DNA of 64,000 nt, from NCBI GenBank assembly GCA_037379345.1, contig CM074518.1, positions 24,428,001 through 24,492,000 on the forward strand. The letters are read 5' to 3'. Shown here piece by piece: positions 573 through 23,223 of the stretch; the first letter of the stretch is position 1, and every line of letters begins with the position of its first letter. The notes beneath the pieces are model-generated. The model searched no databases. It had not been told where the DNA came from and saw only the letters and a list, made by a program, of their open reading frames with translations. Both the position numbers and the translations under genes were made by a program. Origin of the DNA: Perna viridis (taxonomy: Eukaryota).

Positions 573-781
573 TTAGTTCGTTGCAAGTTTGGGTTTTTTA
601 TATATCTTGTTGGCTATGGTCGAACGTGGCACATTAAAATGCCTTGCTGCCTGGTAAGTATTCATCTTTCCTTCTCGAACACAATCGACAGCCCTCTGAA
701 GGTTTTCTTGGCTATACGAATACTTTTGGTAATATCGCCCTGTATTGGTTGGTTTGGTAAAGAACTGCAAGGCTTTGTTTC
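573..781 (-). CDS. Alternative terminal exon psq-8
   Basis: Acceptor atcttgtag|GA, phase 1; YSQENLQRAVDCVREGKMNTYQAARHFNVPRSTIANKI. Confidence 0.88.
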
Positions 782-2593
782 CTACAAGATATAACAGTGT
801 CTGCTCAGTGTTCAGAAACATTTCTTCAATAAAAAGGATGCAACATAAAAATTAAAAATAAGTCCAGAACATGTGAGCAGTACAACAACAAAATAATCCC
901 GCATTACACAATCCGGAAATACATTATGAGATACACTAGCTGGGTCAAGTTAAGTTATGGAAACAAATATTCAAATAAAAATGTGTTTACTGAGCAGCAA
1001 CAAAATCACAATACATTTGTCAAAAGACCGTAGATGTAATAAGTACTTCACGCAGTTCCAGTTCTCTGATCTGCATGATTGCAGAAAATATTGAGTTCGT
1101 TTGAAAAACACTTTGAAAGAGCTTTTTTCTTGTTGCCAGATTTCAAATATATATTCGCAAGAAAGAAAGGAGATCATATCCTTATGCTATGTTCCTTAAA
1201 TGTATAATTGGTTAAGACACGGTTAACTTAAAACATGTTGAAATTTTTATTGACAAAAAAAATGTTTCCAGGTATTACACCTATTTCATACAAAAATTAT
1301 TGCATATACAATGATTCAGAAACCAGATTACAACCAATGAAAATCAGAACTGAGAGTGTCCCAATTTAGGGACATATCCACTAGCAACATAAAACACAGT
1401 TAAAAATACATTACATCTCCCTTTGCTAAAATTCGGCTTCTTGTGCATCAACTTTCTCACAGAAATGCTGCAAAACCTTGACATATTGTTTCATCAAAAG
1501 CCATTAACCGATTAAGGGATAACTTCACAATGAATATGAATGAGTGAACTATGGGGTTCTTATATAAACCTCAACTTAGTTTGGCATGTGTACACTGGTG
1601 ATATATTCTAACATGAAACAAACATTATAAGCGTATTTTGTTTCGCAGATGACGTGGATACAGGCAATGGGTTTTCCAGTCGGATCAACGTTGACTCTGA
1701 TTCATCAGCAAATATTAATTGTTTATATTAATATGCACTAAATATTACAATAGGGTATGTAAGTCTCGTCATGTGACCCCGTGATTTCACGAAATTCAAT
1801 GGGTTTTAATCTACTATTCAAAAGCATAGAGATTTGTCATTTAGAGAGCGATGAGTTCAGTGTTATTGGCAAAAATCTTCCTGTGTAAAAAAAATACCGA
1901 TAAAATGACAAATAACTATTTCCACATGATAAATGTAGTAAGAAAAAAAAACAAACTTAAAGATTTTGCATTGTTATACGTTTCCAGTACCCGGAAGTAA
2001 ACAATAAAATCCAGGTCGGTCTTCGGTTTTCAATATGTTTTACATCGGAAATTCCGGTAAAGAAAATGAAACTAAAACGAGACTTACATACCCTACAGTC
2101 AAATATATTTCAAGTATATTCAATGTTGACATCAGCAAAATACACTTGAGACGTCGGAAATATAATCAACTTGCATTAAAGGTAACAGACGTTGACATTG
2201 ACGTAGTCGAGTGGGCTGCATCGCTTTAATGTTCATTGTAGAAATTATCTACTTTTAACATTTAGTCAAATGCACTAAAAACTTAAAGGTTCATTTTAGT
2301 AAAATTATCTTTAATCGGCAAATGCTGATATTAGTCAAATGACTAAAATTCTGTTCATACTTGACGGCGAACGTGCAAGTCAAATGAACAAATGAACAGC
2401 TCGGTTCAATACTGATATGCTTGTAAGATAAATCAATGCAATGTCGACAATCCACTTTAAGTATAATCATGTGCGTTACTACGATGAAATTGCACGTCAC
2501 TTCCGTTTAATGTAGACGCACATGTAAGCCATGAACACTATACTGTACGTATGCGTACATTAATATTACATTTTTTAATGTATAAGGAATGAT

Positions 2594-2796
2594 TCAGCGT
2601 AAGTGTTGAAGATGCATGTTCTTTCTAACATATATTTTGTTGGAAATGGTCCCTCTAGGAACGTTGAAATATCTAGCAGCTTGATAAGTATTCATAACAC
2701 CAGCCCTTACTGCTTGGACTGCTCTTTGTAGGTTTTCCGGGTCATAGTGGTGTCTCTTTCGGTCTTTCTTTAGCACTGGCTTAGTTTGCAACTGTC
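2594..2796 (-). CDS. Alternative terminal exon psq-7
   Basis: Acceptor acttttcag|GA, phase 1; YDPENLQRAVQAVRAGVMNTYQAARYFNVPRGTISNKI. Confidence 0.88.
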
Positions 2797-3389
2797 CTGA
2801 AAAGTAGTTAAAACTTTTGATATCCAATGTCTTCGTATTACTTTTAGTGTTTATTTTACATAATACATGTAACACGACATTTGAAAGCACCAGTATATAG
2901 AAGTAGCAAGTGTTCAGGTGATAAAAAATGTCTCGGTATAATATCACCATTCGGAACAAACAATGCCGCACTTTTTATCCATTGAAATGGGAAAGTTAAC
3001 AATGTCAGTAACAAACGTATGGATTGTAATATCTAACAGAACAAGTAAACAACAAAACATCCAGTTACACTGAGGCTGTCCTTAGCATTAGAGTGAAAGA
3101 ACGTAATTATTAAGTCGTACGGTTTCTATCAGTAAATGAAAGGGTCGAACTTCAATTTACGGGTGGATCAACCACAGCATGATTTGCAGTCCAATGTATG
3201 ATGCACATCTGCAATTTTCGGGAGAAAATTCATAAAAAATTATCAATCACAACTTTTTAACTGTCAACCCACTTTTCTCCTATCAAATCACTCTACGAAC
3301 TTATAATCGACTTCATTTCATTTAGGGCCTGAAAAGGTTCAACACCGCTAAAATGCAAGTTCAACAAAAACTTCTAAAGCATTTCCATT

Positions 3390-3595
3390 CTATGCATCTA
3401 ATACATTTTCTAACATTGTAAATTTCCTAAATTTCTTCGCCTTCCTGTATACAGTCATCCGAGGAACATTATAAACATCAGCGACGGAGTCTAAGCTTAT
3501 TCGCCCTTCCACGTACGCTTTTACGGCACGGTCCATGTCATAAGAACTGTAGTTTTTGTAACCCTTGCTCCGATCCCCTTTTCTGGTTATTTGGT
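3390..3595 (-). CDS. Alternative terminal exon psq-6 (not in ORF track): DQITRKGDRSKGYKNYSSYDMDRAVKAYVEGRISLDSVADVYNVPRMTVYRKAKKFRKFTMLENVLDA*
   Basis: Hand translation; acceptor ttcattgcag|AC, phase 1; psq HTH pattern. Confidence 0.85.
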
Positions 3596-3772
3596 CTGCA
3601 ATGAACAGAAAAAATATTGAAAGTCGTTTTTAATAAAAATGATAATTTAAGAAAATTCCTGTAACACTTAAGAATTTACAAGAAGTCTTGTTAAGAGTTT
3701 TTGTTAGATTACGGAAGATTCACTCGTTGAATTTCTTCCGAAAACTCTTCTTTTTTTATTCACATACATGTA

Positions 3773-3881
3773 CTAATTAACTGTTCGGCTTGATACGTCG
3801 TAGTATTGGGCAGCTTTATTAGAAGTCATTTTGTCTTCCAACACGACCAAAACCGCTTGTTCTAGAACTTTCCTATCCTGT
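3773..3881 (-). pseudogene. Decayed psq exon (DRKVLEQAVLVVLEDKMTSNKAAQYYDVSSRTVN*)
   Basis: psq-like helix pattern, but the tttcag acceptor read in phase 1 gives DRIGKF* (out of frame with the psq reading), and a TAG falls within the recognition helix. Confidence 0.6.
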
Positions 3882-5699
3882 CTGAAACTATAAGAAATGT
3901 CGTTGAAATGAGTATATAATAAGACCTTGATTCTAAGTGTCAATTTATCAACAACAAAAAACAGTCCATGACATTCAAAGCGCTTTTCTTTCTTAAGTAT
4001 ACATGTACCTACTTGTATGTTATAAAAGTCGTTATACTATTAATTATCTGTAAATTGACATAAATAGAATATTACGACAAAACTCCAAAGGTCAACACGA
4101 ACATTTCCCACAGGATGAACCAACTCTTTCTTTAAAAGAAACAACGCCAAAGTCAAAACACACACTTGCTTGAATGAAAACGCTCAGCTCTAGAAAATTA
4201 CAATGATAGTCTAGCAATACAATGTATATAGCAAATATTTACAGTCAAATATCATTTCAGGGTCGTTCTTAATTGAGAGGTGCACCAACAGCACATGAAA
4301 TTTCTGATGATTGCCCATCTAGTGATGACCTTGCACCTAAATTACAATTTATGATCAAAATATTATAATAAACCGTCATCCAAAACTCGAAATCAACGTC
4401 CATAAAAATGGCAAACCTAATATGAAGCCTTTATCAACATAGACTGTGTCAAGTATATGTAGCAGCAGAGGAAAAAGTCACGAAAAAGGTCTAACAGACA
4501 AGTAGACGGACTATAGGGTAATATAGTTCACCCCTCACTCGAAGACGGAGACCAAGTTCATAGAAATTGTTTGAAGCGTGTTTAACTTACTGTCCGTATG
4601 CATGGAAATCCCCAATTTTCAGAGATTGTCTGACTCTCATAAGTATGCAAGTTAGAAATTCGAAAGGTAACTATAAGACAAAAAAGAGCTTTGGGAGCAC
4701 AGCATGATATGACCGCAGCAAGTTGACCTCTGTTCACTTGAGGGCAAGTGTGGATACAATATTAGTTTTTGACACAATTAAGCATAGGGACAAACAGTTC
4801 AATTAAAGGCGAAAAAGTGTTGCAATGCATGAAAGTGTGCTAATCAAGAACCTTTGACTCTGATCCTTGTAACCAAAAAAGCATAAATCTGATATAAAAA
4901 CTCAGGCAGAAATTTTCACAAGGAATTCATTAAAAACATTTCAAAATCAGACCATATATGAAAAAGAAAATGTTTTGCCCCTTACAACTCGATAATCGTG
5001 AAAGATATCAGAAATCTAATTGAAAAACGCAGGGAAGATTTCGTACCCCTTTAACTCCAAAATGGGTAAACATATGTCTATCGCGTAAACTTAAACATTA
5101 TTTAAAACAAGAACACAGTGACATCTTAATCATTAAAATCGGATCAACTATTGACTTTTTTAGCAATTCTAACGATAACACCTATTTTCCCCCTTTTAAT
5201 GCATCAATTTCAAAGGGGCGGGTCAAAAACCTCTAGAAACTATAGGGCCCTCAGAATTGATCTTATAATGAACATGTCAAGTCTTGATTCCATTTAGCTT
5301 GAATAAACTAAAGTTAACGGACGCCAACGACGACAGTGTATTACGATTATTCCGCCGCAGTTGGTATTGAGTTCGCTTTGACATCATCTGATATCCATGA
5401 TGCTTCACCATGGCAACCTAACAGATGTAGCTTACAACCTCGCATTTCATTGGACAACTGTGTGATTTCAACCGTAAAATGTAAGGCTCTATTGGAGGCA
5501 TTGGTGTCCGGAATATTTTCGATCACTATCATTTATTGAAAAATCTTTTATAAATTGAATATTTGGAAAGAGTTTACTTGTTGAACCAATAAAATAATTA
5601 AAATGCGAATTAGCACAGTGGTCATACAGTCCACCTTATAAATTCTTAATCAGTTTTGTGTATGGAAGTGAGAACATGCGTCGGCTATCTTTTTTAAAG

Positions 5700-5990
5700 A
5701 TAGTACTCGTTCTTTTTTGCGGTCGTATTAAAAATGCTATACCGAGCATCTGAACTGTTGATCAGGTATGTTGAAGTTTCTCCTTAAAATTATATTCGTC
5801 ACTTTTCTCAGCAAATTATCGACATACCAATGGGCACTGACTGTGTCCCTCTTGTAGGCGATTTGTTTCTTTATCCATATCAAACTTCATTTCTTCAAAA
5901 TTTTGGAATGAATTTAGGTAGTGCTTCTAAATTCAAACTATCTTTGATGTTCGGGAAATTTATATTTAATTCATATTTAAGTATAAACTT
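5700..5990 (+). mobile_element. Penelope-like retroelement RT remnant
   Basis: IPMGTDCVPLVGDLFLYPY resembles the GIPMGTNCAPLLADLFLYSYE RT motif; frame broken; boundaries approximate. Confidence 0.55.
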
Positions 5991-6571
5991 CTCAGCTACA
6001 TGTTTCATCATCTGTACAAAGAACACATACACATTTGTTCTGAGTTTAGGGCACACCATGCCACAGACCAACAGTATTATAAACAGCAAAGCATGTATAA
6101 TTTAAGTATTTTTTTATTTAGACTTTGGATTAAGATTCACGCTTTTATAATGACTCAAAAATAGACAAAGAAGTCCCTTTCTAAGTTCTTGCACATCGTC
6201 CACATTATTTCATCAACATGTTCAATTTAAAAAGCAGTCTGAGTCAGATAAGGTTGTCTATTGCAATGAATACAAACATACTACTACCCACTGCTACATT
6301 AGTATATATGTGTGTATATACATCCGCTTAAACCTTTGGCTTTAAATCCATCAAATGAAAATGTTTTTCATTTGTTTCTTGTTTGTTTTATTATCTGTTT
6401 CTGTTTTCTTCTATTCTTTTCTTTTCTTCTTGATTTCGTCATTTTTTGCAGGTTGTGTTTTTGCTGCAAACGAAGTTTCAATACCTTAAATTCAAAACAT
6501 ATCAAAATTATTCAATCGAAGCTTTCCTGTAACTATTATTTCTATCTGGAAAACTCCTTCAAACTGCCAAT

Positions 6572-6810
6572 TTACTGAATTGTTTCCAATTTAACTTCTT
6601 CATGGGTTTTAACGCATACTTTGTTTAACCGTTTCTTCAAACGGTATCTAAGAGTCGGGCGAGGAACACCGAACATATTTGCAGCCTTTAATTCTTTCAT
6701 TTCTCCCGAGGTAACTGCAGCAACTGCTTTCTCTAAAGTTTCTTTGTCATACTTTCTATATCTCCGAGGTCGGTTAGTCTGAGGCATATTCTTTAAATTC
6801 ACTATAATAC
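6572..6810 (-). CDS. Alternative terminal exon psq-5
   Basis: Acceptor ttttttttcag|GT, phase 1; YDKETLEKAVAAVTSGEMKELKAANMFGVPRPTLRYRL. Confidence 0.88.
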
Positions 6811-7910
6811 CTGAAAAAAAACACACATGACATGAAGTCCATGGCAACCTTTCATCCCAAAGAAACACCTTTTATATGTTCAATTCCAGTTTTAGTTTTT
6901 CTCTACCTTTCATACCACATGCATTAGTCAGCTTTTCACACTCAGCTAATGATAAATATCTAGACAAACTAGTGCACCTTGCATATCACCTGAACAAAAC
7001 TAGGCTATGAACGAGCAAGCTACATGCAACTATATACAACGACATACCACCCTAGTTGCCAGCCAATACCATTTCCAAAATATCAAAACACGAAACCATT
7101 CATCACTAGTTCGCAAGGTCCTAGATTTTCACAAAATTGAAGTGAAAAATACAGGATCTAACCAACATTTCCATACAGGTCATTTACTAGGGTTCTTCAT
7201 CTACAAACATTTCACACTCCAAAAACAGTTTCATATATATAACTGAACTGGAAAGATATATTCTAGTATAAAAAAAGAAAACATTCGCACACTAGAAACC
7301 AAATCGACTTTTTAAAATCATAACAACCATTTAGAGAAAACGGCAGATCTCAAAATGTAGTAGTGAACAGAGAGAAAGAAATCTTTTCAAATTTAATAAT
7401 AGTGTTTTTTTTTAACTTCAAAATGGTTAATATACATATTATATACAATGAACATTACAGACCTTCTAAACTGTTCATGTAACTTATATCCAAAATAAAT
7501 GAAAAGTCTGTTCATTGTCAGATCAAATAACTCATTGAGAGAATATTTGTATTCCATATCTAATAATTCAAATCCTACTGGGTTTGAATGAATATACTTA
7601 TATATGTAAGTTCAAGCTGTCCTATATCAAAGTGATGATCATGTAGGTAAACCTAACAAAAAGAACATAAAACCTAGTATTACTGGAATGTGATATTGAG
7701 TGTTCTTCTGTTTCGTTCAACAAAAATTCAATCCATTTCAATTCATCAATACGTTTCTCCCAGCAATCTGATATTTATTCTTTGACCGAAACTTTCCAAA
7801 ATGACTAAACTATCCAGTCGTGAAACACAATAAACGTCGGTATGCCAGTAATATATCGTCATATCCAATCTCTTTTCAGTCAACTCAAAAGCTTGAAATG
7901 TTCTAAGACG

Positions 7911-8107
7911 TCAGTTTTGATTATTCATTGACCGAATCTTCTTTAGTCTACTGAAAATTGTCTGTTGCGGCACTCCATACACTTTAGCTGCCCGACACTG
8001 AGATAATTCTCCTGATAAAACCGCTGCTATTGCTTTCAACAGCGAGTCCTCGTCGTACTTTTTTCGTGTGTTCCATCCGTGTCTTGGTGGAAATACTGGA
8101 CGATAAC
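7911..8107 (-). CDS. Alternative terminal exon psq-4
   Basis: Acceptor aatttcag|GT, phase 1; YDEDSLLKAIAAVLSGELSQCRAAKVYGVPQQTIFSRL. Confidence 0.88.
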
Positions 8108-8540
8108 CTGAAATTACATGATGAATTTTTACTGTTTCCATATTTTGTAGAATCAAGCATATCAAGTGTTTCCAAATATATTATGTTAACACTGACCTGT
8201 TCATTGAACAACGAACCTCAACACAAGCAACTAATACTACGTACTACGTATACTGAATGTAAGAACACTTCAAAATATCTATATCTTTCAACAATTATCT
8301 GACAAATTTGCCAACTTTAAAACTTGGGACAATGGTTCAAAAGTCATTTAAAAATATTGTAATACGACGGACGCATGCAACCAATCGGTGGATGCATATA
8401 TGCTACCAAAGCCTTGTCAAGAAAAGACTGTACTATTTTACTTGAAGGTAATCATCTTGCAATGATTAAGTATACTTCAAAGAAAAAGTAATAGCACTCA
8501 ATTATAAAATCACATCAAACCATTATTTATAGCACACTTA

Positions 8541-8870
8541 ATACCAAAACAACTTCAAACGAACAATTACAGCACTATATACCAAAAACACTACAAAACA
8601 AATATTTGTAGCACTAACTACTAAAACCACTGCAAAACAAATAACTATAGCACTAAATATCAAAACCACTTCATACGAATACTTGTAGCACGAACTACAA
8701 AACCACTTCAAACGAACGATTGTAGCAATAACTACCAAAATCGCTTCAATCGAATATTTGTAGCACCAAGTACCAAAACCACTTCAAACAAAAATTTGTA
8801 GCACTGACTACTATAACCACTTCAAACGAATATTTGTAGCACTAAATACCAAAATATACTTACTTCAAAC
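8541..8870. repeat. Minisatellite, about 39-bp unit, about 8 degenerate copies
   Basis: Recurring (a/c)aaaaccacttcaaacgaatatttgtagcacta..tac unit. Confidence 0.8.
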
Positions 8871-9434
8871 GAGCAGTAATTTTGTAGATATTCAACTTCA
8901 CACAACGTTATGATCAGGATTTTTAATTGATATTGCAATCATTTATAAAGTCTATTCAACTAGGTTGTTTTAACATATTGCAGTGAAGATGACATGTTTA
9001 AATGGAGTAATTCATTTATTCTAAAAGTACATGAATCCAAAGCCCGCCCCAAGATTGCAATCCGAGATAATGCATGATTCCATGGCAATCAAAAAAAGAT
9101 GAGAGTATGGTTCTCCTCTTACAGCAATCATTAACACAAATAAAATCTTTAATACCAAGCACATATATTTTATATATTCAACAAACAAATATATTTTTAT
9201 GCATCACACATGGGAAAAATCAGTCAAGTTTCCGACATCACAATACACTATCAAATGCATACCGGTATCTCATTTTTGACGTAAAAATCAGCTCAACAGC
9301 AGTTCACACTATATTATCACAAGCAATAATCTATTTGACACAATATTTACAAAGATACTAGAGCGCATGACATCTGATTTTTATGTCTTTTAAACCAGTC
9401 TTCGTGCCGAATTTTTTAAAATACCTATGAAACA

Positions 9435-9889
9435 TTAATAAGTAGTTTTCGCCTTGCTTATAGTTTCCTCGACTCCACTAGCGTTGCGATTTTTATCGGT
9501 GATGAACATTTTTAAGTTGGAATGTCCTGCCTCGTTTCCATTTTCACTTTCTTCGCGATGTAAATTTTCGCTTTCGTCATCAATAAGCAAATATACTTGT
9601 TCGTCAGTGTTGCCTTCATAGCTCAAGAAATCCGCGGAGTGTTTCTCTGGTTTAATTTTTTTGTTTGAAACTTCCATCATGTCTAAACTCCTCAGAAACT
9701 TTTCCCGGGCCTTCTTAACGCGATAACTTATCGTCCTTCTGGGTACGCCAAAGGTATTGGAAGCCTGATAAGCATTCATGCTACCGTCTTGGACGGCCTT
9801 CACCGCAGTCGTGAGATCATTTGGACTGTAAGTCTTTTTATTTTTCCCTCGTCTACTCGTCATGGTAGAAAAATTCTTTGTATAACAGT
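9435..9889 (-). CDS. Alternative terminal exon psq-3 with about 80-aa acidic C-terminal tail
   Basis: Acceptor gtctttcag|AC, phase 1; YSPNDLTTAVKAVQDGSMNAYQASNTFGVPRRTISYRV. Confidence 0.88.
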
Positions 9890-10985
9890 CTGAAAGACAT
9901 ACAACATTTAAGTACACGACAATCATGCAAGATCTGTGTTATTGTTTACTAAACACACAAATAACAACATGTATATACTAAACATCGACATAAGCAGATC
10001 TCAAGATGCAATACAAAGTACATTATAAACTAAGCTACAGGTTAAGTTATGAAAGAAATCTAGTTTCTTCGAGATCAACAAACGTGAAGAATTCACCTTA
10101 TTTAATAAAGAAATATTAATCAAGCAGTCAAAATAGTCAAACAAGCTTCGATTCTGAACATTCTTTACCTGATGGCAAAGAATAAACTTTTTTCCAAAAT
10201 ACTACGAAACGGAGTGTATCACATAAAGACAACATCCATGCAAACACCACCAACAACAGACACATGGAGGACACCGATAACCCAACAAAACTACGCTCAT
10301 TATTAACCATCAGATACAAAGGCTTCAAGCATGTCCTGATCTGATTCAACAATGGACCCCCAGAATACATGTACGCAACCAAGATAAAGGCTACAAATAT
10401 TACAGTCTCCAGAAGTCCCGGAATTCCTCGCATGTTTCTTATCAATAATTCTAAGGTTCGGTTTGGTTGAACCATCAAGTTGCATCAGAAGTCAACCCTC
10501 AAATTTCTTAGAGCAATTCTGAAAAAAACTGTTTCAAAGTAAACATTTTACAACATTTAAGATTTTATTTTAAGTAATCTTTCTGTACAGCAATTTTAAA
10601 TTATTTAGAGCTATAATGAACATTAAGCAGTACCTCTTGTTTCTATATAAACTAATTTTCTCATTTTTTTTTAACAAATATTTTAATAATTACTGTAGCA
10701 ACTTAATAGAATATTCTAGCATAGTATTGAACTCTGTTAATAAAAGCGTGACAACATAATAATAATAACATTAAATTCATCGTTATCTAGAAACAACACA
10801 AATGGTTCCAAAAAGGTGCCTCCATACCAGGATGCACAAGCAGATATTGACCTTATCTGAATAAAAAGGTAACGGTAAAAAGCGTAGGTAAATAAGGTAT
10901 GAGGGATTAATGTCATCAAAATCCAACTGTAAGTTTGCAGAATTTAGGGTGTTAATATGTTTAAAGTCCAAATTTCGGTCAAATT

Positions 10986-11170
10986 TCACACGTCGTGCTC
11001 CTTTTTCACGAACTTTTTCACATGAAACAGTAAGGTAGTTTTCGGTACACCAAACATATTTGCAGCTCTTATAAATGTAAACTGATGATTAACAACAGCG
11101 TCTATAGCCCGTTGCATTTGTTCTCGACTATACTGCTTGCGTTTCACCTTCTGTTTCATTGTGTTGGGCC
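10986..11170 (-). CDS. Alternative terminal exon psq-2 (GPNTMKQ...YSREQMQRAIDAVV...AANMFGVPKTTLLFHVKK...)
   Basis: Acceptor atgtttcag|GG, phase 1; psq HTH; own stop. Confidence 0.87.
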
Positions 11171-12099
11171 CTGAAACATAGGTTAAATCGATCAATAATC
11201 TAAAAACTTTACAATTCCAAACTAAAGTAAAAAAAAGAGAAAAGGCTCAAATTTTATACTTCCTTTTTCATTTTTATTTTTTGGTAACATCAGTCGAATG
11301 AATACGTCCTTAAACACCGATATAATGCTATACATTTACTAACAACATATAATGAGGCGAAGTAATATGTATTCCCAACCTCAACTTCCGAAACTCCTAT
11401 GAACAATTAACAAATTGAAATTCAAACTAAGTAGGAATTAAAACACATTTAAACAGTGGCGTGCAATCATATTACCAAGTGATCAACAACCTCTTATCAT
11501 GGAGTTTGTCGATCATTTGTTTAACATTTCAGACAATTACTTTAACCAAAAGAATGGGTTAAAACATGTTTAAATCTACTCAATAACTCGCACCAAAATA
11601 GCAGAGAAGAAAATATTATATAATCAGTATACATGTAATTCAGAAAGTGAGTTTCAAAAGAGAAATCTATACTTTTTATATTTTTAAGCAATGCAAGGTT
11701 CAAAGGTCAATAAAACAAAGGAGCGTTTTGTTTGACTTTCTGGCAAAGTATTTTATTCAAAATAATTCATTACAAAGTACTCTCTCCAAAATGAAGTTCA
11801 GTATTACATGTAAACACATTGAAGATTTTAAATGCTCTTGGTTAACAATATCGACTTGTTCAGTTTACTCTGATTTAAGATTTAGTCAATAAAAATGTCC
11901 GGAGTTGTATTTCTTTGTTCAGAGAACATTCCACTGAAGTTCTTCAGAGTTCAACACTGTACCAAATTCTCATCCACAGGTTCAACTGAAGATGCTTCTC
12001 TAACCGACTTTCTACAACCTTTTCACGGACTTTCGATAGAAACAGGGGATTATAAACTGGACGCTAGTTGTTTAGAACTTACTTGTCGAGGCCAGGTTT

Positions 12100-12850
12100 A
12101 TTTAGTGGAGGTCGTATAACTGCTTCCTTAAATGCCTTCGGAATATACCATTCATGTAATGACTTGATCACTATTTTCTAGAGGTTATTATTGGTGCTAG
12201 GCTGTTTAAACACCGATTAAGTAACGAAGCTGGCAGCGGGTCGAGTTCACTAGATTTCGAACAAGCCTTTGAAATAATCTTCCGAATTTCATCAACAGAC
12301 GTAGGTGTTAAGACATAAAGTACATGACCGTCAAATATAATGTCCGCACAAAAGGCATCACTTCCGTTCGGAGAGGAATCATTTGCACTTGCAGTTGATA
12401 GATTTTTCCTGGTTTCAATCTTATTGAAGTAGAAGTCACCGAACGTATTCGACAGCAGATCTTTGTCACACTCATGAGATGGTAAAACTACGGTCTTCGG
12501 GTTATCCATTCATTTGTTTGTTAAATGGAACACTTTCTTTTGATCACATCTGACTTCCAACATTTTATTTAAAAAATAGTCAAGTCTTGTTTTTCAAAAG
12601 TAGCTTTTGTGTTTCTATCAATTGTTCCTTGTACAGATGTTTATGAACCTCGGACTTCGTCTTCCGCATTATACACTCTGCTTTACGGCGATCTGTTGTA
12701 GTGCTACGAGGCTGGGTTGAGTGCCATTCTGTATTCGTTATCGTTTATATTGAAGTGGAGCATGCTTCTCGATGATTGAACTAAGCACCGAGTTTTACGT
12801 TTAAACTACTTCGTCAAACGAAGCTGTATGGTTCGGCGTGATATTCGAAC
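12100..12850 (-). mobile_element. Non-LTR retrotransposon ORF2 remnant (region between endonuclease and RT)
   Basis: LEKHAP..., PT.VDEIRKII...SKSSELDPLP..LL..CL..LAPIIT typical of CR1/L2-type ORF2; stops and frameshifts. Confidence 0.7.
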
Positions 12851-12885
12851 AACTGATGCCGGTTTCAAAATCGTGTTATGAATTA

Positions 12886-13067
12886 TCACATATTCTTGTT
12901 TTTTGCTTTGGTCTTCGTGACCCAGTCATAAATGGTTGAACGTGGTATTCCAAATTTTTCTGCCGCTTTATATGAACTCAGTTTGCCCTGAATGACCATA
13001 TGGACCGCTTCCATGAGTGTTGCAGAATCGTAATACTGCTTCCTTCTATTAAACCTTGGAAGCAAAT
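12886..13067 (-). CDS. Alternative terminal exon psq-1 (not in ORF track): DLLPRFNRRKQYYDSATLMEAVHMVIQGKLSSYKAAEKFGIPRSTIYDWVTKTKAKNKNM*
   Basis: Hand translation; acceptor atgtttcag|AT, phase 1; psq pattern Y....L..AV..V..G..S..KAA..FGIPRSTI. Confidence 0.88.
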
Positions 13068-16000
13068 CTGAAACATGAATAACATAAGTTTTGTACTTCC
13101 GTCGAACAGAGCACCGATAAGTTCACATGTCAAACACAGCATTGATATTTACAGGTATCAAATACAGCATGATATTTGCACGCAAAGTCCATCAGTTTTA
13201 ATTGCAATAGTCAATCGGCTGATAAAATAAAATTCTAAAATTCTCGCAGTCCATTTGTGAAAACGATAGATGATTAAATCAAACACTGCTGCAGCAACAG
13301 CACGTATTTAAAACCATAACTATACATAAAAAATCGTAAAAGACCTAATATAACTCGTTTGTTCATCAAGAAAAATCATAGGGTTCAAACAGAGGTACAT
13401 TATAATAATTGGTCATTTCTATAATGACTACCAAAACAATACAATATTCTCTATCAAAGAGTTGCAAAATGCACCCCACGAAGGTTTCAATTCTATAAGT
13501 GAATATTATATTTCCAGTACATATAACAAGTAACACCTATTTGAGGACTTTTTTTTCTAGCTTTCACTGATAACTTTACATGTACTGTGGTATAGCAACC
13601 AATTTGTCACGATTTCTCAGCAAGATATTAAGACATAATGGAGAATGAACTTTTTGAATGCTGTCAACAATTGCAGCCTTGCAGGGATTAAGCATCCCAA
13701 CAGAGTTAACAGTTACATGTACTAGTTTACTACATGAAACGATACAATACCATTACACAAGCTGATCTGCCCGCAAAAAAAAACATTAGATGAATTTCCC
13801 TGAACATAAAACATTGAAACGATACACATACATTTTAGTACCAAACCTTTTACAATACCACTTTAAAATCAGTCTTCATGACGATTCTTTATAAAGAAGT
13901 AAAATAGGCTGCTAAAGTCCGGTTTCGTAGGTTTTACTCAGTGAAAAGGCAATAGTCATATAGATGACAGACCATATTTTGTCTTTATTCATTACTTTCT
14001 TATCTTGTATACATGCCTTTAGCTCACTTGTGGATCGTATATATATTCCACAGCACAGAAGAAGAGGAGTGGATGAGATGAGGATTTTCTCTTGTAGTCT
14101 AATCGGGCAAGCAATAATTTTAGTCCGAAAATTCACTTTTCTGGGCATCAAACTGGAGGCAAACGTCCTTGACTACCACTTGTATGTGGTTTAGTCATTA
14201 TTGCAAGGGTATCAGATTGATGGTAAACGTCTCAGATTTCTACTTGTGCATAAGAATATTTGCTAGAGAAGTTGTGTCATGTACATTTTGCCCACTACTA
14301 CATGTATAAATGTATGTAATTGCCTCTGTCATGACATTGTTCTATGAATTGTGATAGGCAAGAAGTTATAACTAACTTTAAATACTGCCATCTAATCTGG
14401 CATTTATTGAAGTCATTTCTAACACAAGACTACACAAATTTTCAATACAAGCTTAACAGACATAAGATAAAATAAGGCAGTAATCTTCCAATCAACTTCA
14501 ATAGGATTATTTCATTTTCAAATTAATTCTATCCAAGTCAAGTCAACCCACCCAAACTCTTCAAATGTAATCAAACTATTTCAGTTTTCAAATCAATCAT
14601 TTTCTTTTCATTTTCGGTATTTTATGGAATATTTCTATATGCCGTTTCCGTGGAGCTTTCAAGTTACTTCTACTAGTCATAATTGCTTAACCACCAGACA
14701 ACAGTTATCTTAAGGTACCAGAAATAAAGGCACTATTTAACATAATAATAAAGAATACTTCATGCTCTACCGTGGATTAATACAATACTGGTGTCAGTGA
14801 TATTCACAATAAAAAACAATATTCTGGGATTCTAATACTTGGTACTGTCCAGCAATGAGTTATTATAAGTAGTAGACAACAGTCATTAGACATGAATTGT
14901 GTAAATTTCATGATTTCTGTATTTTCATACCATGTAAGTTAATGTGGCTAAATTCTGATTACATGTATATAGTGTCATTTCTTCTAGGCTTTCCTGTTAT
15001 GAATGTACAAAAATGTTGATTTTTCAATGTTGGGTGTCTCTCCTCATTTTTAAGTTTATAGTTTCATCCACAATAAATTTTGTTTTCATAGTATTGTTGT
15101 CTCTGTACAGTTTACCCAGCATTTAAAACAAGAACTAACAAATCACCAACACCAGTATATAAGGAATAGAACTGAACAGAAGGAACAGCACTAAATACTA
15201 CCAATATGGTTTTTTTTTAATTATTTATTTTCATTTGTTTACCAAACATACCAAAATAAAAAATTCTTTGAGCATCTTATCATAACTTAACATTGTGGAT
15301 TTCCTATTCAGAGTTTCAATAAAAAAACATTGCCTTATAGGTAAGTTCATGTACCAACAAATATACATGTAGAGTACTGTATCAGAAGTATCTAACATTA
15401 AATATGTCTAAATAATGACAACCTGTGTACCAGTACATGTCACTAAGACTTAAAGACTGGTTTTTTTGTTGCACCTTCTGTGCAATAACTTTTTGATCAA
15501 TTTAGAAATTATGGAAACCCACAATTGAATGAAGAAGCATGAAATATCCTTGTAATATTGTATGTATAAATACAATTCAAAAGTATATAATTTACTTTAC
15601 TCAAGGTTGATTCACAAAAGCAAAGGATATAAAATCCACCAATAACACTGTATCCCCTTACAAAATAGTACATGTATTACCGGTATTCTCACACAAATTC
15701 TACATGTATCTCTGTTTTTAAATTATACTGTGTACTAAACAGTAGAAGTCCAAATCATTATTATGATATGAATCTCTAAAATTCAATTTTCAACAGCACA
15801 AGAAAGAAGACAAGATCCAAGTGGATTTTACTTTTTAGCCCAGTGAGTCTTGAGTAAAGTCAGTAGAACATAGAAATACCCAGTTATCACATGTACAGAC
15901 TCAATGATGATGAATGAGTTTATGGTGAGTACAATACAACAAATAACCTACCTTGTGGAGCTTCTTCATTGTCAATAGAGCAGTAGGTTTTATATTAACT

Positions 16001-19000
16001 GAACCATTTCTCTGGGGATTAAAATATTTTATGTTTGCAAAGCCATGGGTTATTTCCAAAGATGCAAATTTTAGTGATCTCATTTATAAGCAATATATCT
16101 CTGTATAGTTGAGAACATTTCTATAAACATTACTAAATGTGTGTAATTTAATATCTTTGTTTTATGATATAAGTACAAAAGTAAATATGAATTAGCTTCA
16201 GTTTTGACACAAGCTACACAATATAACAAATTTGACTTCAATGCTGGACAGTAAGCCTACCAGGATATTAGATTTCAAAAACCTTTTGTTTTCCTTTTTT
16301 ATATAAAATTGGCCATAAGCAGCTATCTTGCTTAACAAAGCCCCTTAACCAGTATTGCATTGATTTTTATAACCTAAAGTGACTTTAATATATTGTTTTC
16401 ATGTTCAGTTGATATATAAAAAAGCAATCCCACATTTTGTACAAAAATTCTTCAGTGCATGACTTACATGTACTTAGGTTTACATAGGGGTCTTATTAAA
16501 ATCAGTTAGCTCCATTGATCAGACATTTCTCAAGTTCTAAATAGCACTAACTATTTTACAAATATCTTATTCATAAGACTACTCCAAAAATAATGATACA
16601 CTGTTCCCTTCTTTCAGTGACAATGAAAAAGCTCCTAAAATCAGCTGCACACTGCTATCTGGTCTGTTTCTTTGTCTTCTTGGGCAAATGGACATGGGGA
16701 CAATAGAAGAATCTGCTCTATTTTCATTTTAAACTTTCAACTAAACTTTTACAATAAATTGCTTTTTTTTGGTCCTATTTTTGTTGAAAACAGTATTATT
16801 CCATTTTTTCTGATTAATCTATCTAAAATGATTTGTAATTTATTGTATTACAAAAGCATTTTACATTGTACCATACCTAATAGAGCAGATTCTAACTTTA
16901 ATATACAAACTATTTTTATCTAGAATATCTACTGAATTGACATCTGGACATCAGATTGCAACTAGAAAAACTGTGAGCAATGCTCACTAAAGGATACCCC
17001 CGCTCTCCAACCTAGTAGGCAATTAGGTCAAAATATAAACAGTTGTCAACATGAAGTTGATGTTACTTAAGTCAGAAATCTAATCCAACCTACATGTACA
17101 TGTATATACAGCTTCTGTCAAAAATGTTGTGGCTGTAATAATAGTTGCAGAGAAAAATTGCAATGAAAAAGTAGAAGACAGACACACAGACAGGATGATC
17201 ACTACAAGTGTATTAACTGAACAGTCTCTTACGAACACAGATGCCTCAACTTTATTTGATACCAATGAGCTACTTATAACAGTTATTACATGGATCCCAA
17301 CCAACAACTGATTTGTGATAGAACATTCATTCATCTTTAAACATAATTGGTGTGTGATAAGGACAAATGCATGTACTGCACATGCAGAACATCCCATAAT
17401 ACTAAATCTGCTGCACTTTACCAAATGTCTAATCAATATCTAACCTAGTTTTAACTGACGACAAATTGAACAGAACCCTCATCAGAGCAGTGTGAAAATG
17501 GCAGAAGTTGACTACATTGTAAAAATCATCATGACAAAGTTTCATACTAGATTCCAAATCAATTCCTGAATTTAAGTTCAAGTAAATGCATATGACACAC
17601 TAACAGATAGTAGCAGGACTATATATCTCTGATGCCTCAGGTTGTAGACATGCAGTTAGCAATATACCCCCTGTCACAAGAAATGCTAACCTTACAACAG
17701 AAAGGACAGATATCTAGATGACCTTAGGCATACATATATGTACCTCCACTTAACTAGCCATAAAACTCGTAATTTACAAAACTTATTACATGTATCTGTA
17801 AAGTTTACTATTTTAGATGAAACAGTGGAAATTGGCAAGATTTTTATTCAAAATATATGTGCATCAAATTAAACTGAACATTTTCTAGGGGCACTAAGGC
17901 CCTTGATATTGATCACAAGAGATATGGGAAAGTTGTGAAAACTACATTGATACCGATGGTTTATGCATTTATTCAAAAGGTGGCAAAGGTTCAAAATATA
18001 TAAGAATTGTCATCACTTGTACTTTAAAACTGAACTTTCACATGTACATGTATAAATGTACATTTAGCTGCATAAATTTGAAAAAAGTGAAATATCTTCA
18101 AGTGTATATTTTATCTTCGCCAATACTTAAGTGCACTGATTTTAAAATATAAGACAATTCAAAGGAATCTTACTAGAAAGGAAGATTAGGATTAATTATT
18201 GAAGCTGTTTTCACAACTAGACCATTTATTGTTTTGAGTAAAATTGAATGCTTCATTGTACACTAGCTTCTCTATAAAGCTAATTTTGTCATTCGAACTT
18301 ACAAGTTGTAAAGCTGGCTCATTTTGTCATTGTGGAAGGAATATTGTTCATCGAAACCAAATTTCATGGTTTTCACTGTTCAGTCAAATCACAAACTAAA
18401 ATTCCCAACGACAATTTAAAATTTCCATTATAAAATTTAATGCCCTATATAATTATCTAATTAAAGAACCCAAGATCCATAAGGTTTTGACACACCATGA
18501 AAATTGGATACCAAAAATAATGTAAGTGTACAATGAAATCTGGCTTAAAACAAAACTACTTACATGTAAGTGATTCAAAACACACAAGTGTTCAGTTTAC
18601 CAAGGTTCAAACACTTTTCAACTGATATACATGTAAATGGACTTTAAAAAGGGTCTTATTAAAAGATTTTTAGGACTTTTCAGTGTTTGATTTAGACATG
18701 TTTCATTGCACCTATACTGTTAATTGTACAATTGTTCTGAACAAATAAATGACACCAATATTACATTGTACCTTTAGCAATTGAAAATAGACTTACATAT
18801 GTACATGTACTACATGTATTGTAGAATTTCATGATACATGTACATGCACTGAAGGGATTAATGAAAAAAAATAGAAATTCTTTTTAATGACCTCAAACTG
18901 AAAGTTCTTTTTCATTTACTGTAGTAAGTTTTCTTTCTTTACCTCTTCGAAAGCATTAAGCATTGTTGAGAATTTTCGGAGATTGCACATATGCAAAAAA

Positions 19001-19807
19001 CTATATTCATTTGAAATATTAATATTGATGTCATGTCATTACAAGGGCTGGGCCACTTACCTTTCAACATGTTGAGCTGAAATCTAATTCAATAACAGGA
19101 ATTTACAAGTACTTGTGCATTTATCTTTTAAAAAAGTAATATTTTTTAAAAGTTGTTTCAAATTCTTATTGAATATTTACATCAATGAAACAAACTTGAT
19201 CTTTCCATCAATTGGCCTAATAAGACCAGCTTTCATGATTTTGCTAACTCAAATTTTAAATACATGTACATGTAGGTAAAGCATGTAGTTGGGTGATTCA
19301 TTGGTTATAAATAAATTTACATAAATGTTACACAAAAGCTTCATGTAAAATAAAATGAATTTCAAAAAGTTTTAGACATAAAAAAAAATCACAAGAAATG
19401 AGTATGTCTCCAATTTAACCAAATGACCTCAACAAGTTTGCTTGTAAATTCCTTTGTATAATATACTAGGTGAAATACATGGTGATGAGTCTGTACCCCT
19501 TACAACCAACCTTGAAAAAGCATTTTAAGGCACTGGCTTCCATGAACATCAAGTATTCATAAAAAATAAAGATAATACTCAAATGGAAAAGATATGAACT
19601 CATAAGTTTGAAATGTGTTACCTCAAAATGTTATATGTCCATCCTATCAATTTAGAAAAAAAAAATGAAAATCCTAATAATGATCATGATCAAGCTAACT
19701 TAATGCCTTTAAAAATATATTGCACATAAGTCAAGGTTGCTTCCAAGAATGTGATAACTAAGTATTTACATAACTATCAATATGAAAACCAAGAAGTTGA
19801 TCCCTAC

Positions 19808-20121
19808 CTGAAGTTGGCCCAATAAACATAGGTCCACCTGCAGTCTGATCCCCAAACGTCATATTGCCATCACCCGATAAATTTGATAAGTTGGATATAT
19901 CTTCTTGTGACCAATCAACAGGGAGATCACTCTCGTCATAGTCTTGTTCATCATCTCCGTGATATAATCCAGTCCTTTGTCCGTCACCTTGTTCGTTGTC
20001 CACATGCATCACAAGTCCGCCAGTTTCCTCCTCAACCTTTTCTATTTTCACTATTGCCAGATCTGCAGCATCTTCTGAACTTTCAGATGGACCTGGGTCA
20101 TGACCTTCTTGTGGCCTAGAA
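19808..20121 (-). CDS. BTB/POZ protein, constant exon 3 (acidic linker) ending in the shared phase-1 donor
   Basis: Acceptor tgctttcag|T completes the phase-2 codon; open frame SRPQEG...IGPTS; donor TCA G|gtaggg, phase 1. Confidence 0.88.
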
Positions 20122-20430
20122 CTGAAAGCAGAATTGATAACATATAAAAACAATATCCTGTCATTCAACATAATCAGAGATGATTTTACGAGGTCAACAA
20201 ACAAAGCAAAAATTGGCAAAATCAAAAGTATATAAACAGTAAAAAAAAGAATCATAACGGTAAAATTCAGATTTGAAATCCAGATTTGAAATAGTGAAAA
20301 TCCGCTAAAAACAGAAGAAAATCATTCCTGCATAATGAATTACTCATTTAACTTACATATACAAAATGTACATGATAAATGTACAAAATTGTACGTGAGT
20401 ATATAGTGACTTGAAATAAAAAATTGACAA

Positions 20431-21107
20431 TAAGGCCAAAAAAAAAAAAATGTGTGTTTCCTATCACCTAAAAATTTTGACTGAAGGTACGTTTAGGTTC
20501 CCCGATCCTCTAATGTTTGGATAGCAAATGATCAGCAGTGTCCAAAGACATCTTGATACAATCTTATACATGTATGTTTTGAAGTCTTCAATAAAAGACA
20601 AACACCTTGTCTTAGACAATTTTTATGACTCTCTAGACTTGGCATCCTTTCCGCACTTGATTGTCAAATTATGTTCCTTCAGCCATTCGGATGAGTTTGG
20701 GTGGTAGCTGGTATAAACATCTGTTAATGTTGTCTTGTCAGGAAAGCACGATAATATGTATTCTGCATCCATGTGATGACATTTCGCTATTTCAAAAGCG
20801 ATGACCGAGCTTGCCGCTGTTAAGCAGGCCATCATGGTTTTTATATTCAAGATTCTCTTGACTTTACCAGCGCAATGATGTAAAAATCGTTCAGAGTATA
20901 TCAGGATCGCTCTTCGGCTTTACAAAAATGATATAAAGTCTGCTTCTATAAAGCGCATTAGGAATTACGTTTTAAGATCCAACAAATAACCATGACATAA
21001 TTACAATCGCAAGGAGTAAAACATACCAAAAATTTAAAATATCGCTTTTTTTTGGTGAAAAAATGTTTGGTTGGTGACCGGAAACACACAATATTTTTTT
21101 TGGCTTA
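20431..21107. mobile_element. Non-autonomous TIR element (MITE-like) in BTB intron 2
   Basis: Ends taaggcc(a)n tgtgtgtttcc ... ggaaacacacaatattttttttggctta are imperfect inverted repeats; interior richer in CpG than the flanks. Confidence 0.65.
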
Positions 21108-21200
21108 GGCCTTTTACCCATGCAGTTAGAATTTTAACGGGCCATTTTCATATTTTTTTGTTAAATACATGTATAAATATGTACATGTATGTACTATTAC

Positions 21201-22447
21201 CTTTCTCCATCCCGTTTTTCTGTTTTCTCCACTACACTGGAGTCTTGTGGTTGCTGACTAGAGGACTGTATCTGGAATGATGATATTTGGGACTGATGAC
21301 TTGCTTGTGTAGCACTGCCAGCTGCAAATGTAGGCTTTCCAGTAGAAGGAAGGAAAGATGGGTGAGAGCGTTGAGGAGTACTAGTCATGAAAGGAGGTTT
21401 CAAACTTTCACTGAAGTTATCTGTGGACATTTGTGATAAGCGAGATAGACTTGAAGGTTGTTCTTGTGGTCGTGACTGAAAACCTTGAGAAAGAGGTGCG
21501 ATGTTTAATGTTCCTGCTTGCTGCAGGGGAGGTGGAGGCGGTTGGGTTGAGAAATTATTTGGATTTGATGGAATTCTTGACATGACTGATGTAGGCACTG
21601 GTTGATTAATGTTTTGGGATTGATGAGTATCACGGAATGGTAATTTTGGTGAGATGGGCATCTGTGATGGTTGCTGCAAAGGGTCACTTGTACGAGTGCG
21701 TCCCCCACCACCATCATCAGCAATGCTAACAACACGAGTATCTTTTGTATTAGAAACATGTGATGCTACAGATATAGATGTTTTCTGTTGTGACAATCTT
21801 GCTGGTTCTGGTTGTCCAGGTACTGGTTTTTCTCTTTGTATCAATTCTAAACTATCCTCAATGATTTCAATAACACCTGGTGAATCTGATCGACTTGATT
21901 GACTTGATGCACCTGAACGAACACTACCTGTGCCACCACCAGGCATATAACTTTGAGTCATTGAAAGTGCATCATCAGCTCTTTGTGAATTTACATCTGA
22001 GGTCGGACTTGATTGACGCTGCATTCTTTGTCTTTTTCCTGTAGTTGGGCTACCTGGACGAGGTGATTCTGACATTCTTTTCATTAGTCTATCATGATAT
22101 GTTTTTTGTAAGCCAGTGGCACGCACATGACGGAATTCAAGAAGATCATATTTGTCAAATTTGTAGTTAGCATTATGCATTTTTCCTGTGGATTTTTCAA
22201 GGCATTTGAAGAAGTCTGAGCAACATTTGATCACACTGTCTACTTGTAAAAGTCGAGCTACTTTTTCAACATGTTTAACATTATCCTCTGTAAGTAACAT
22301 AAATCCTTCATATAAATACTGTAGGAATGTGTTTACAGCCTCCTGTTTAATATCTGCAGCAAGACGAACCTCCAACTCAGTTCCAACAGATGCATTTTCC
22401 ATTGACTGTAACATTGGACATGCTGCCAAGAGCACAACTCTGTGCGC
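21201..22447 (-). CDS. BTB/POZ protein, constant exon 2 (rest of BTB plus long S/Q/P-rich region)
   Basis: Acceptor tttgttttag|GCG gives TK|AHRVVLLAAC..., FLQYLYEG, VARLLQV...CC (BTB hallmarks); donor AG|gtaata, phase 2. Confidence 0.93.
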
Positions 22448-23097
22448 CTAAAACAAACAAAAAGTTAATCTTCAATTTAACATTTTGAAACAAAAATCTC
22501 AAACTGTACATTGAAACCACCAAGATGATTAAGTACAGATTACACTAAAAAATCGATAATCAAATTCATAAAATTACCAGAAAAATTCAATGGCAAAATA
22601 TTATTTTCCCAATTCCACTTTATTCTTCAAAGGAATCAAAAACAACTCTTCAGTCGCATTCAGTTACATGTACATGATTTTGTACATCATCTGACCGTGG
22701 TTGTATCATGCTGCACTCAGTAAAGTTTTTTATTTCATGAAATTACTTGTGTAATTGTTTGTAAATTTGTACACTACAATGTACATGTACATATGTACAT
22801 GCATGATTTTTCTTAATTCTTTATCTTGGTTTTCACATACAATGTACCAACTATAGCAATTATTATAATTCAAGATCAACAAGCCTGTCTGCCGGTACTA
22901 CAAATGTACAGCTACATGAACATGTAGCATTTAATACCAGTGTCTAGAAATACATGTATGAGTACAATGTACATCATTAATCAATACAGGTCTCTTGTCC
23001 TCATAAATGTATCTTCATGATCTTGGTGATACACATGCATTGTACATGTGTATGTACAATTCATGTACAAAATGTACATACTTAGCATATTTATTAC

Positions 23098-23223
23098 CTT
23101 TGTGACAACATTTCCAGTGCAGATTAATGCATCACACAGAAGCTGACTTCTCCACATCTGGGCAAGCTGACAGAGCAACGAGCTCGAATGGATATGATTC
23201 ATATACACTTTCTGATAATTCAT
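23098..23223 (-). CDS. BTB/POZ protein, constant coding exon 1 (MNYQKVY...DALICTGNVVTK)
   Basis: Acceptor ttttttcag| with exon starting at 23233; ATG at 23223; 42 codons typical of a BTB N-terminus (H..SLL.QL..M....LLCD..I); donor AAG|gtaata, phase 0. Confidence 0.9.

Follow-up and report, generated by a model that had tools for sequence, protein, structure and literature searches.

How a single BTB gene could supply many different DNA-binding domains is the question raised by a locus of the mussel Perna viridis (assembly GCA_037379345.1, contig CM074518.1, here C8), in which exons for a BTB domain and its linker are followed by a run of same-strand exons, each encoding one pipsqueak-type (psq) helix-turn-helix (HTH). 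The window, by which we mean the whole 64-kb stretch analyzed, is C8:24428001-24492000 of the forward strand; positions are counted within it unless they carry a contig prefix. An original prediction, made from the DNA letters of the window, had proposed that one phase-1 donor joins the constant BTB region to any one of at least eight psq exons. We find that the locus is very probably a single gene that gives rise to a family of BTB transcription factors through alternative last exons: three constant exons end at donor 19808, which is spliced to one of about 25 terminal exons. RNA evidence for four of these exons, conservation of individual exons in Mytilus and the reading phase of the array carry this conclusion.

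A constant BTB region with a single phase-1 donor

The constant region consists of three minus-strand exons, for a BTB domain and a disordered linker. Coding exon 1 (23098..23223) begins with the ATG at 23223, encodes the N-terminal strand and helix of the BTB domain and ends in phase 0 at the donor AAG/GTAATA. In a tblastn search with residues 1-43 of the Mytilus protein P0001 it shows 97.7% identity, and an acceptor at about 23233 implies a putative 5′ untranslated (UTR) exon further upstream. Exon 2 (21201..22447; acceptor TTTTAG/GCG in phase 0, donor AAAG/GTAATA in phase 2) supplies the remainder of the BTB domain and a long Ser/Pro/Gln-rich linker. Exon 3 (19808..20121) enters in phase 2 at TTTCAG/T, encodes an acidic linker and has a single donor, TCAG/GTAGGG at 19808, which is of phase 1 because the last base of the exon is codon position 1. 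Exons were searched singly, with database orthologues from Mytilus standing for the whole protein; exon 2 alone scores 28.6 bits against the Pfam BTB profile, and the full domain of the Mytilus orthologue 51.7 bits. The splice sites can be read directly, and tblastn with the Mytilus orthologue recovers the same three blocks, so this part of the prediction stands as it was made.

The eight predicted psq exons also hold at every coordinate. Their acceptors (13067, 11170, 9889, 8107, 6810, 3595, 2796 and 781) are preceded by a pyrimidine-rich tract and Y-AG, mostly TTTCAG, and all fall at codon position 2 of the psq frame; they are therefore of phase 1 and compatible with donor 19808. Each exon contains one HTH and a stop codon 4 to about 90 codons beyond it. 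The proposed check against the HTH_psq profile (Pfam PF05225; 45 positions, gathering cut-off 20.4 bits) is passed by eight of eight, with scores from 27.3 to 48.2 bits. A profile built from the psq open reading frames (ORFs) gives nine matches in the window, all on the minus strand within 576-13122, and none elsewhere in the 64 kb on either strand; confinement of these ORFs to one strand and one interval cannot be due to chance.

RNA joins the donor to exons A-D one at a time

RNA was mapped on positions 7150-13149, which contain the four exons nearest the constant region (A-D), using raw reads of one stranded RNA-seq run together with contigs from three further studies. RNA runs of the same organism contain the constant exon. 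Reads and contigs diverge from the genome at 8112, 9894, 11175 and 13072, in each case into one identical 30-base consensus, and this consensus is the reverse complement of 19813-19842, adjoining the TTCAG of donor 19808. The five-base offset from the acceptors reflects the TTCAG shared by the end of exon 3 and the end of every intron. These last 30 bases of exon 3 before TTCAG are single copy in the 124 kb of window plus flank, and they are absent from a further 40 kb downstream and from two fetched paralogous loci (described below), whose exon-3 ends differ at several bases. The junction from 19808 to 8107 (exon D) is represented by 15 raw reads and by contigs of RNA sets X1, X3 and X4, and that to 9889 (exon C) by 10 raw reads and contigs of X3 and X4; the junctions to 11170 (exon B) and to 13067 (exon A, entering exon-3 sequence at 13072) are both found in contigs of X3 and X4. 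All four predicted junctions that fall within the mapped interval are thus present in RNA, and neither reads nor contigs there contain a joint between psq exons, which bears out the claim that these exons are not chained.

RNA coverage of the interval forms four separate blocks of 0.5-1.3 kb (7363-8107, 9129-9889, 10665-11170 and about 11800-13067), and first mates lie nearly all on the plus strand, the pattern expected for minus-strand RNA in usual stranded libraries. Depth is low: 1.8 Gb of RNA-seq gives a few reads per base. Exon A (11799..13067, minus strand, as are all terminal exons) has a psq HTH of 41.9 bits, a stop at 12886-12888 and a 3′ UTR to about 11800, with RNA ending at 11799-11835. 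Exon B (10665..11170) has an HTH of 40.3 bits and a stop at 10986-10988, and its RNA ends at 10665; exon C (9129..9889) combines an HTH of 34.3 bits with an acidic tail of ~90 residues before its stop at 9435-9437, and its RNA ends at about 9129; exon D (7363..8107) carries the highest-scoring HTH (48.2 bits) and a stop at 7911-7913, with RNA ending at 7363-7401. Three of the four blocks, those of exons B, C and D, end close to ATTAAA, a variant of the poly(A) signal (at 10687, 9153 and 7397, respectively). Separate blocks, junctions from exon 3 and the lack of joints between exons together establish that A-D are alternative last exons, each ending its own transcript. The original description of a mutually exclusive cassette is thereby right in allowing one exon per mRNA and wrong in its term, since these exons have their own 3′ ends and are not internal cassettes. 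Each mRNA thus carries exactly one DNA-binding module, since the reading frame closes within every variable exon and, in the four tested with RNA, the transcript ends there as well. Within the transcribed 3′ UTR of exon A lies a minus-strand ORF of 112 residues (12171-12509) with no Pfam match.

Beyond exon D, the window contains four terminal exons with predicted junctions. Exon E (6572..6810; HTH 37.2 bits, stop 6572-6574) starts at acceptor 6810, which eight consecutive T precede. The ORF P0178, taken from a public assembly, is identical to exon E from the HTH region on and differs just before that region, around the acceptor, which suggests a possible indel allele at or near this splice site (window about 6790-6830). 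Exon G (3390..3595; phase-1 acceptor 3595, stop 3390-3392) has a divergent HTH of 27.3 bits. Exon H (2594..2796; phase-1 acceptor 2796, HTH 41.1 bits, stop 2594-2596) and exon I (573..781; acceptor 781 or alternatively 823, HTH 40.6 bits, stop 573-575) are paralogues with 56% identity, differing by 0.34 at non-synonymous and 0.87 at synonymous sites. The ninth profile match, left out of the original list and picked up by the profile search, is a decayed copy between exons E and G (3773..3881 on the minus strand, ORF 3776-4036). Its HTH breaks off at a stop within helix 3 and matches Pfam only in part (23.0 bits, profile positions 5-32 of 45), and the closest acceptor of good quality, 3881, does not fit the phase of the psq frame. 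A phase-1 join there runs into a stop after 6 codons, so that the copy, if spliced, would yield a BTB-only product.

Other identities were considered for these ORFs and rejected. For a pogo/Tigger transposase, the second HTH and the DDE domain are not in the same ORF, and the sequence after the stop in exons A-D is transcribed 3′ UTR; no profile search for remnants of DDE domains or terminal inverted repeats was made. A Pipsqueak-like protein with tandem psq repeats does not match one HTH and one stop per exon and the lack of exon-to-exon joints in RNA.

Extent and conservation of the exon array

The array does not end with the window and runs on about 40 kb past its start. In the 60 kb below the window start we found 13 further psq exons on the same strand (C8:24403431-24427295), one of them, at about 24411008-24411252, very divergent. 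Distal to these, four same-strand exons with two to three C2H2 zinc fingers each occupy C8:24387610-24400012; the third finger of one of them, Z3, is missing a cysteine. Nearly all of the outside exons have a phase-1 acceptor. The locus thus amounts to 21 psq exons, four C2H2 exons and one decayed copy over about 64 kb, so that the earlier count of at least eight was sound for the eight exons named, and the modules are not psq alone. No plus-strand psq or zinc-finger exon occurs in the 164 kb examined, nor did tblastn find within it counterparts of the Mytilus tails that have neither psq nor zinc fingers (P0123, P0126 and P0172). The next 40 kb beyond the array contain retrotransposon ORFs only; within C8:24328001-24347000 (window-relative about -100000 to -81000) such retrotransposon-like ORFs, judged by eye, reach 1137 residues.

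The gene is represented by single loci in the RefSeq annotations of Mytilus californianus (LOC127704711), M. trossulus (LOC134685251) and M. galloprovincialis (LOC143083055), with isoform numbers up to X50, X47 and X46, respectively, all named "uncharacterized". Exon 2 is 73% identical to the M. californianus isoforms over 100% of its length. The Mytilus isoforms share one sequence as far as the residues that the donor encodes (...MGPTS) and then differ in their tails, diverging exactly where donor 19808 would place the switch, as the predicted architecture would have it. At the first variable position, every tail has one of the residues G, D, E, V and A, because the codon there begins with the constant G of the phase-1 donor. 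Most tails contain one psq domain, some have two to five C2H2 fingers and a few have no recognized domain. The Mytilus loci therefore share with the Perna locus their orthology, the split point and a repertoire of mostly single psq domains plus some C2H2 fingers; they differ in being known from automatic models, and in that one locus holds about 50 tails, whereas the best matches in Perna are spread over at least three paralogous loci.

Individual exons can be traced across this split. In a sample of 55 retrieved Mytilus tails, exon I has a reciprocal best hit to M. californianus isoform X21 (79% identity), exon E one to isoform X29 (56%), and exon C one to isoform X8, which has the same kind of long acidic tail. 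Exon D is 70% identical to isoform X30, and one-to-one partners also exist for exons U (80%) and Z1 (71%). Overall, 19 of 26 exons are closer to a Mytilus tail than to any exon of their own array, and therefore most of the diversification predates the split from Mytilus. The young duplicate pairs N/O and Z2/Z3 have ratios of non-synonymous to synonymous substitution rates (dN/dS) of 0.30 and 0.34.

A genome-wide search with four psq exons revealed further same-strand arrays on C8 at 3.045-3.064, 24.916-24.933 and 48.453-48.478 Mb, each with an exon-2 copy of 74-79% identity just upstream. The two loci that we fetched (C8:24889220-24950277 and C8:3029317-3093960, both plus strand) have three constant exons with the same phase-1 donor, followed at one of them by 8 psq exons and, distally, 2 zinc-finger exons, and at the other by 13 and 7. 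The remaining plus-strand locus (C8:48429454-48478170), recognized from a copy of exon 2 and at least 13 matches to psq, appears from these matches to have the same layout. Counting those at least 13 matches, the four loci together hold at least 68 variable exons. Mytilus tails with a best match of at least 55% identity number 11, 6 and 9 at loci 1, 2 and 3, respectively, a distribution that suggests, and does not prove, that an ancestral array may have been duplicated and then partitioned among loci. Elsewhere in the genome, three psq-like matches with identical scores about 2.6 kb apart (C15:14264662-14270039, plus strand) look like a recent tandem repeat, and a psq match within a 490-residue open frame (C3:9849614-9849784, minus strand) could belong to an intact pogo-type transposase, a possible source of psq exons.

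Homologous loci of oyster, scallop and other mussels show the same plan, with 510-580 common residues, G, D, E or A as the first variable residue and alternative tails thereafter; the tails carry a piggyBac-type zinc ribbon (PF13842), C2H2 fingers or a BEN domain. In a language-model search for look-alikes, the Mytilus orthologue fell in a mollusc cluster of 102 BTB-plus-psq proteins whose nearest neighbors are arthropod BTB-psq clusters, which we take as a lead only. With the tail of Mytilus isoform X11, a psq domain, as query, the sole match was the query itself, which is uninformative on other phyla.

These results can be set against other accounts of the locus. The psq ORFs might be independent small genes, or N-terminal relics of pogo/Tigger transposases, lying downstream of an ordinary BTB gene. 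HTH_psq does also serve as the N-terminal DNA-binding domain of pogo-type transposases, the exons show weak Pfam side-matches to transposase HTH families, and the 490-residue frame on another contig could be a real transposase. Yet four of the ORFs are spliced to the constant exon in RNA, which refutes this account for exons A-D, and the ORFs are one-stranded and evenly spaced with phase-1 acceptors, stop shortly beyond the HTH with no transposase frame continuing, and are conserved as single exons in Mytilus isoforms; we regard it as practically dismissed. It is very unlikely that variable exons are transcribed on their own and trans-spliced to the constant transcript, as happens at Drosophila lola and mod(mdg4). 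All variable exons lie downstream on the same strand, where ordinary cis-splicing is enough, and the joined sequence is the exon 3 of this locus and not that of the two fetched paralogues; nothing specific speaks for trans-splicing, although short reads cannot separate cis from trans within one locus.

Given alternative last exons, the size and use of the repertoire can still be disputed. A sizeable share of exons E, G, H and I and of the outside exons could be dead or unused, leaving a repertoire well below 25. The array does contain one decayed copy, exon G and, outside the window, exon S are divergent, Z3 lacks one cysteine in its third finger, and none of these exons has a junction with read support. 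Against this, open frames, phase-1 acceptors and Pfam-level HTH scores are all kept, reciprocal best hits link exons I and E to Mytilus isoforms, the pairs N/O and Z2/Z3 are under purifying selection, the doubtful Z3 included, and four of four tested junctions were positive, so that we consider extensive decay unlikely, if worth bearing in mind. That the many isoforms are mostly noise of splicing and polyadenylation, with no distinct functions, seems quite improbable: the read depth is low and the functions proposed for the isoforms are predictions, but individual exons are conserved relative to Mytilus although the constant linker is only 73% identical, dN/dS is about 0.3, and the architecture is kept in paralogous loci and across bivalve families.

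Several observations weigh against a single gene with about 25 working terminal exons. The junctions examined with reads are those to 13067, 11170, 9889 and 8107, four of the eight in the window. When an alignment of exons E, G, H and I was searched against a protein database, the matches were confined to ORFs of the window itself and of relatives, none of which spans a junction. The divergent exon G has no clear orthologue among the 55 sampled Mytilus tails. Poly(A) sites were placed from contig ends and ATTAAA motifs rather than from tails, and the dimer model described below was made on the Mytilus orthologue rather than on the spliced Perna viridis product, with dimerization and DNA binding inferred. 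Upstream of 23 acceptors we found no conserved intronic selector element, only an ordinary tttcag consensus.

A ZBTB-type BTB domain with exchangeable modules

The closest solved relatives of the BTB domain are ZBTB17, BCL6, BACH1 and ZBTB8A, the first three being solved as dimers, and the FxLRWN motif is absent from exon 1. By its sequence, then, the domain is of the classical ZBTB type and not of the arthropod TTK type. A homodimer model of residues 1-135 of the Mytilus orthologue scored 0.57, as compared with 0.00 for the best of three controls; its runs agree in at least 92% of contacts, with a partner predicted local distance difference test (pLDDT) score of at least 82. Of 30 proteins whose solved structure is a pair of one chain, 21 attain this mark, and of 23 solved as single chains none does (17 of 29 among eukaryotes, 7 of 16 among animals); since BTB dimers are solved, the pass may reflect memorized structures rather than independent evidence.

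With alternative last exons on such a domain, co-expressed isoforms would form homo- and heterodimers through the shared BTB domain, as expected from family knowledge, and the different psq or zinc-finger modules would direct the same scaffold to different DNA sites. Across the 21 psq exons, the consensus keeps a core motif (aromatic, L, AV, AV, G, M, AA, FGVP, TI), and the positions after GVP..TI are the most variable, those of the scaffold being conserved; this pattern fits distinct DNA specificities. The choice of exon is probably made by competition between each acceptor and its poly(A) site.

Drosophila mod(mdg4) has one BTB constant region and about 30 alternative terminal exons with a transposon-related FLYWCH fold. 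It resembles the mussel gene in joining one BTB region to many terminal exons for a DNA- or protein-binding fold, and differs in its TTK-type BTB, its FLYWCH modules and some opposite-strand exons that need trans-splicing, whereas the mussel exons are one-stranded. At lola, common BTB 5′ exons precede about 20 alternative 3′ exons that each have one or two C2H2 fingers, a stop and a 3′ end (PMC11426971). The mussel gene has the same exon design, and its distal C2H2 exons come closest to lola; however, lola modules are zinc fingers and the mussel ones mostly psq HTHs, lola trans-splices some isoforms whereas nothing at the mussel locus requires this, and the lola BTB is TTK-type and hexamer-forming, unlike the mussel domain, which lacks FxLRWN and is closest to dimeric ZBTB. 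The original label "lola/mod(mdg4)-like" is accordingly apt for the architecture of a BTB constant region with alternative 3′ exons, and it does not extend to family membership. TTK-type BTB domains, marked by FxLRWN, are Arthropoda-specific, and the TTK motif was sought in Mollusca with no result (PMC11426971).

According to Siegmund and Lehmann (2002), as cited in PMC11426971, Drosophila pipsqueak, bric-a-brac and ribbon combine an N-terminal BTB with a C-terminal HTH_psq. This is the domain pair of the mussel gene; there it is a fixed product (with four tandem repeats in Psq) on a TTK-type BTB, whereas the mussel isoforms each draw one psq from 21 exons. HTH domains accompany TTK-type BTB in nearly all arthropods examined, and the non-TTK BTB-C2H2 proteins of Drosophila have one isoform each (PMC11426971). 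The mussel loci depart from this pattern. In vertebrates, DNA-binding domains of transposases become 3′ exons of host genes by alternative splicing (Cosby et al., bioRxiv 10.1101/2020.05.07.082677). Those host-transposase fusions are single captures, whereas the mussel arrays are long, consist of old duplicated exons and contain no transposase remnant; capture is a plausible origin of the psq, piggyBac-type zinc-ribbon and BEN exons at bivalve BTB loci, with the event itself not demonstrated.

We found no description of such loci in molluscs in the literature, in line with the earlier remark that no such psq-exon array was known to be described in a mollusc-like genome, and in Mytilus the isoforms are present as unnamed RefSeq models. 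A 2025 survey of oyster transcription factors reports no publication on oyster BTB genes and does not mention an alternative-exon design (PMC12111275), and a survey of transposon-derived factors counts mollusc psq genes as separate genes and reports no isoform arrays (PMC10027918). The locus is real, RNA-supported and larger than first noted; its isoforms were already visible as automatic models, and it is no new category. BTB exon swapping has hitherto been regarded as peculiar to arthropods, bound up with the TTK-type BTB and known mainly from insect genes. A mollusc family that combines a ZBTB-type BTB with psq modules, at 25-50 exons per locus, speaks for a convergent origin of the design, and such loci offer a second, independent system for asking why they arise, how a terminal exon is chosen and how transposase DNA-binding domains are recruited. 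For annotation, counts of mollusc "psq genes" or "BTB genes" may partly be counts of isoform exons.

The evidence leaves evenly balanced a broader proposal, in which bivalves, independently of arthropods, would have evolved lola-like domain-swapping loci on a classical dimeric ZBTB-type BTB and collected small, often transposase-derived exons (psq, piggyBac-type zinc ribbon, BEN and short C2H2). The four C8 loci, with their at least 68 exons, would then share the repertoire of one 50-isoform Mytilus locus and give a large combinatorial dimer code.

On the plus strand of the window, away from the BTB gene, positions 36806-38653 contain a single open frame of 615 residues for an SLC26-type sulfate permease with a STAS domain (Pfam Sulfate_transp, E 1.5e-93; STAS, E 3e-16), which appears intronless in an otherwise intron-rich genome.

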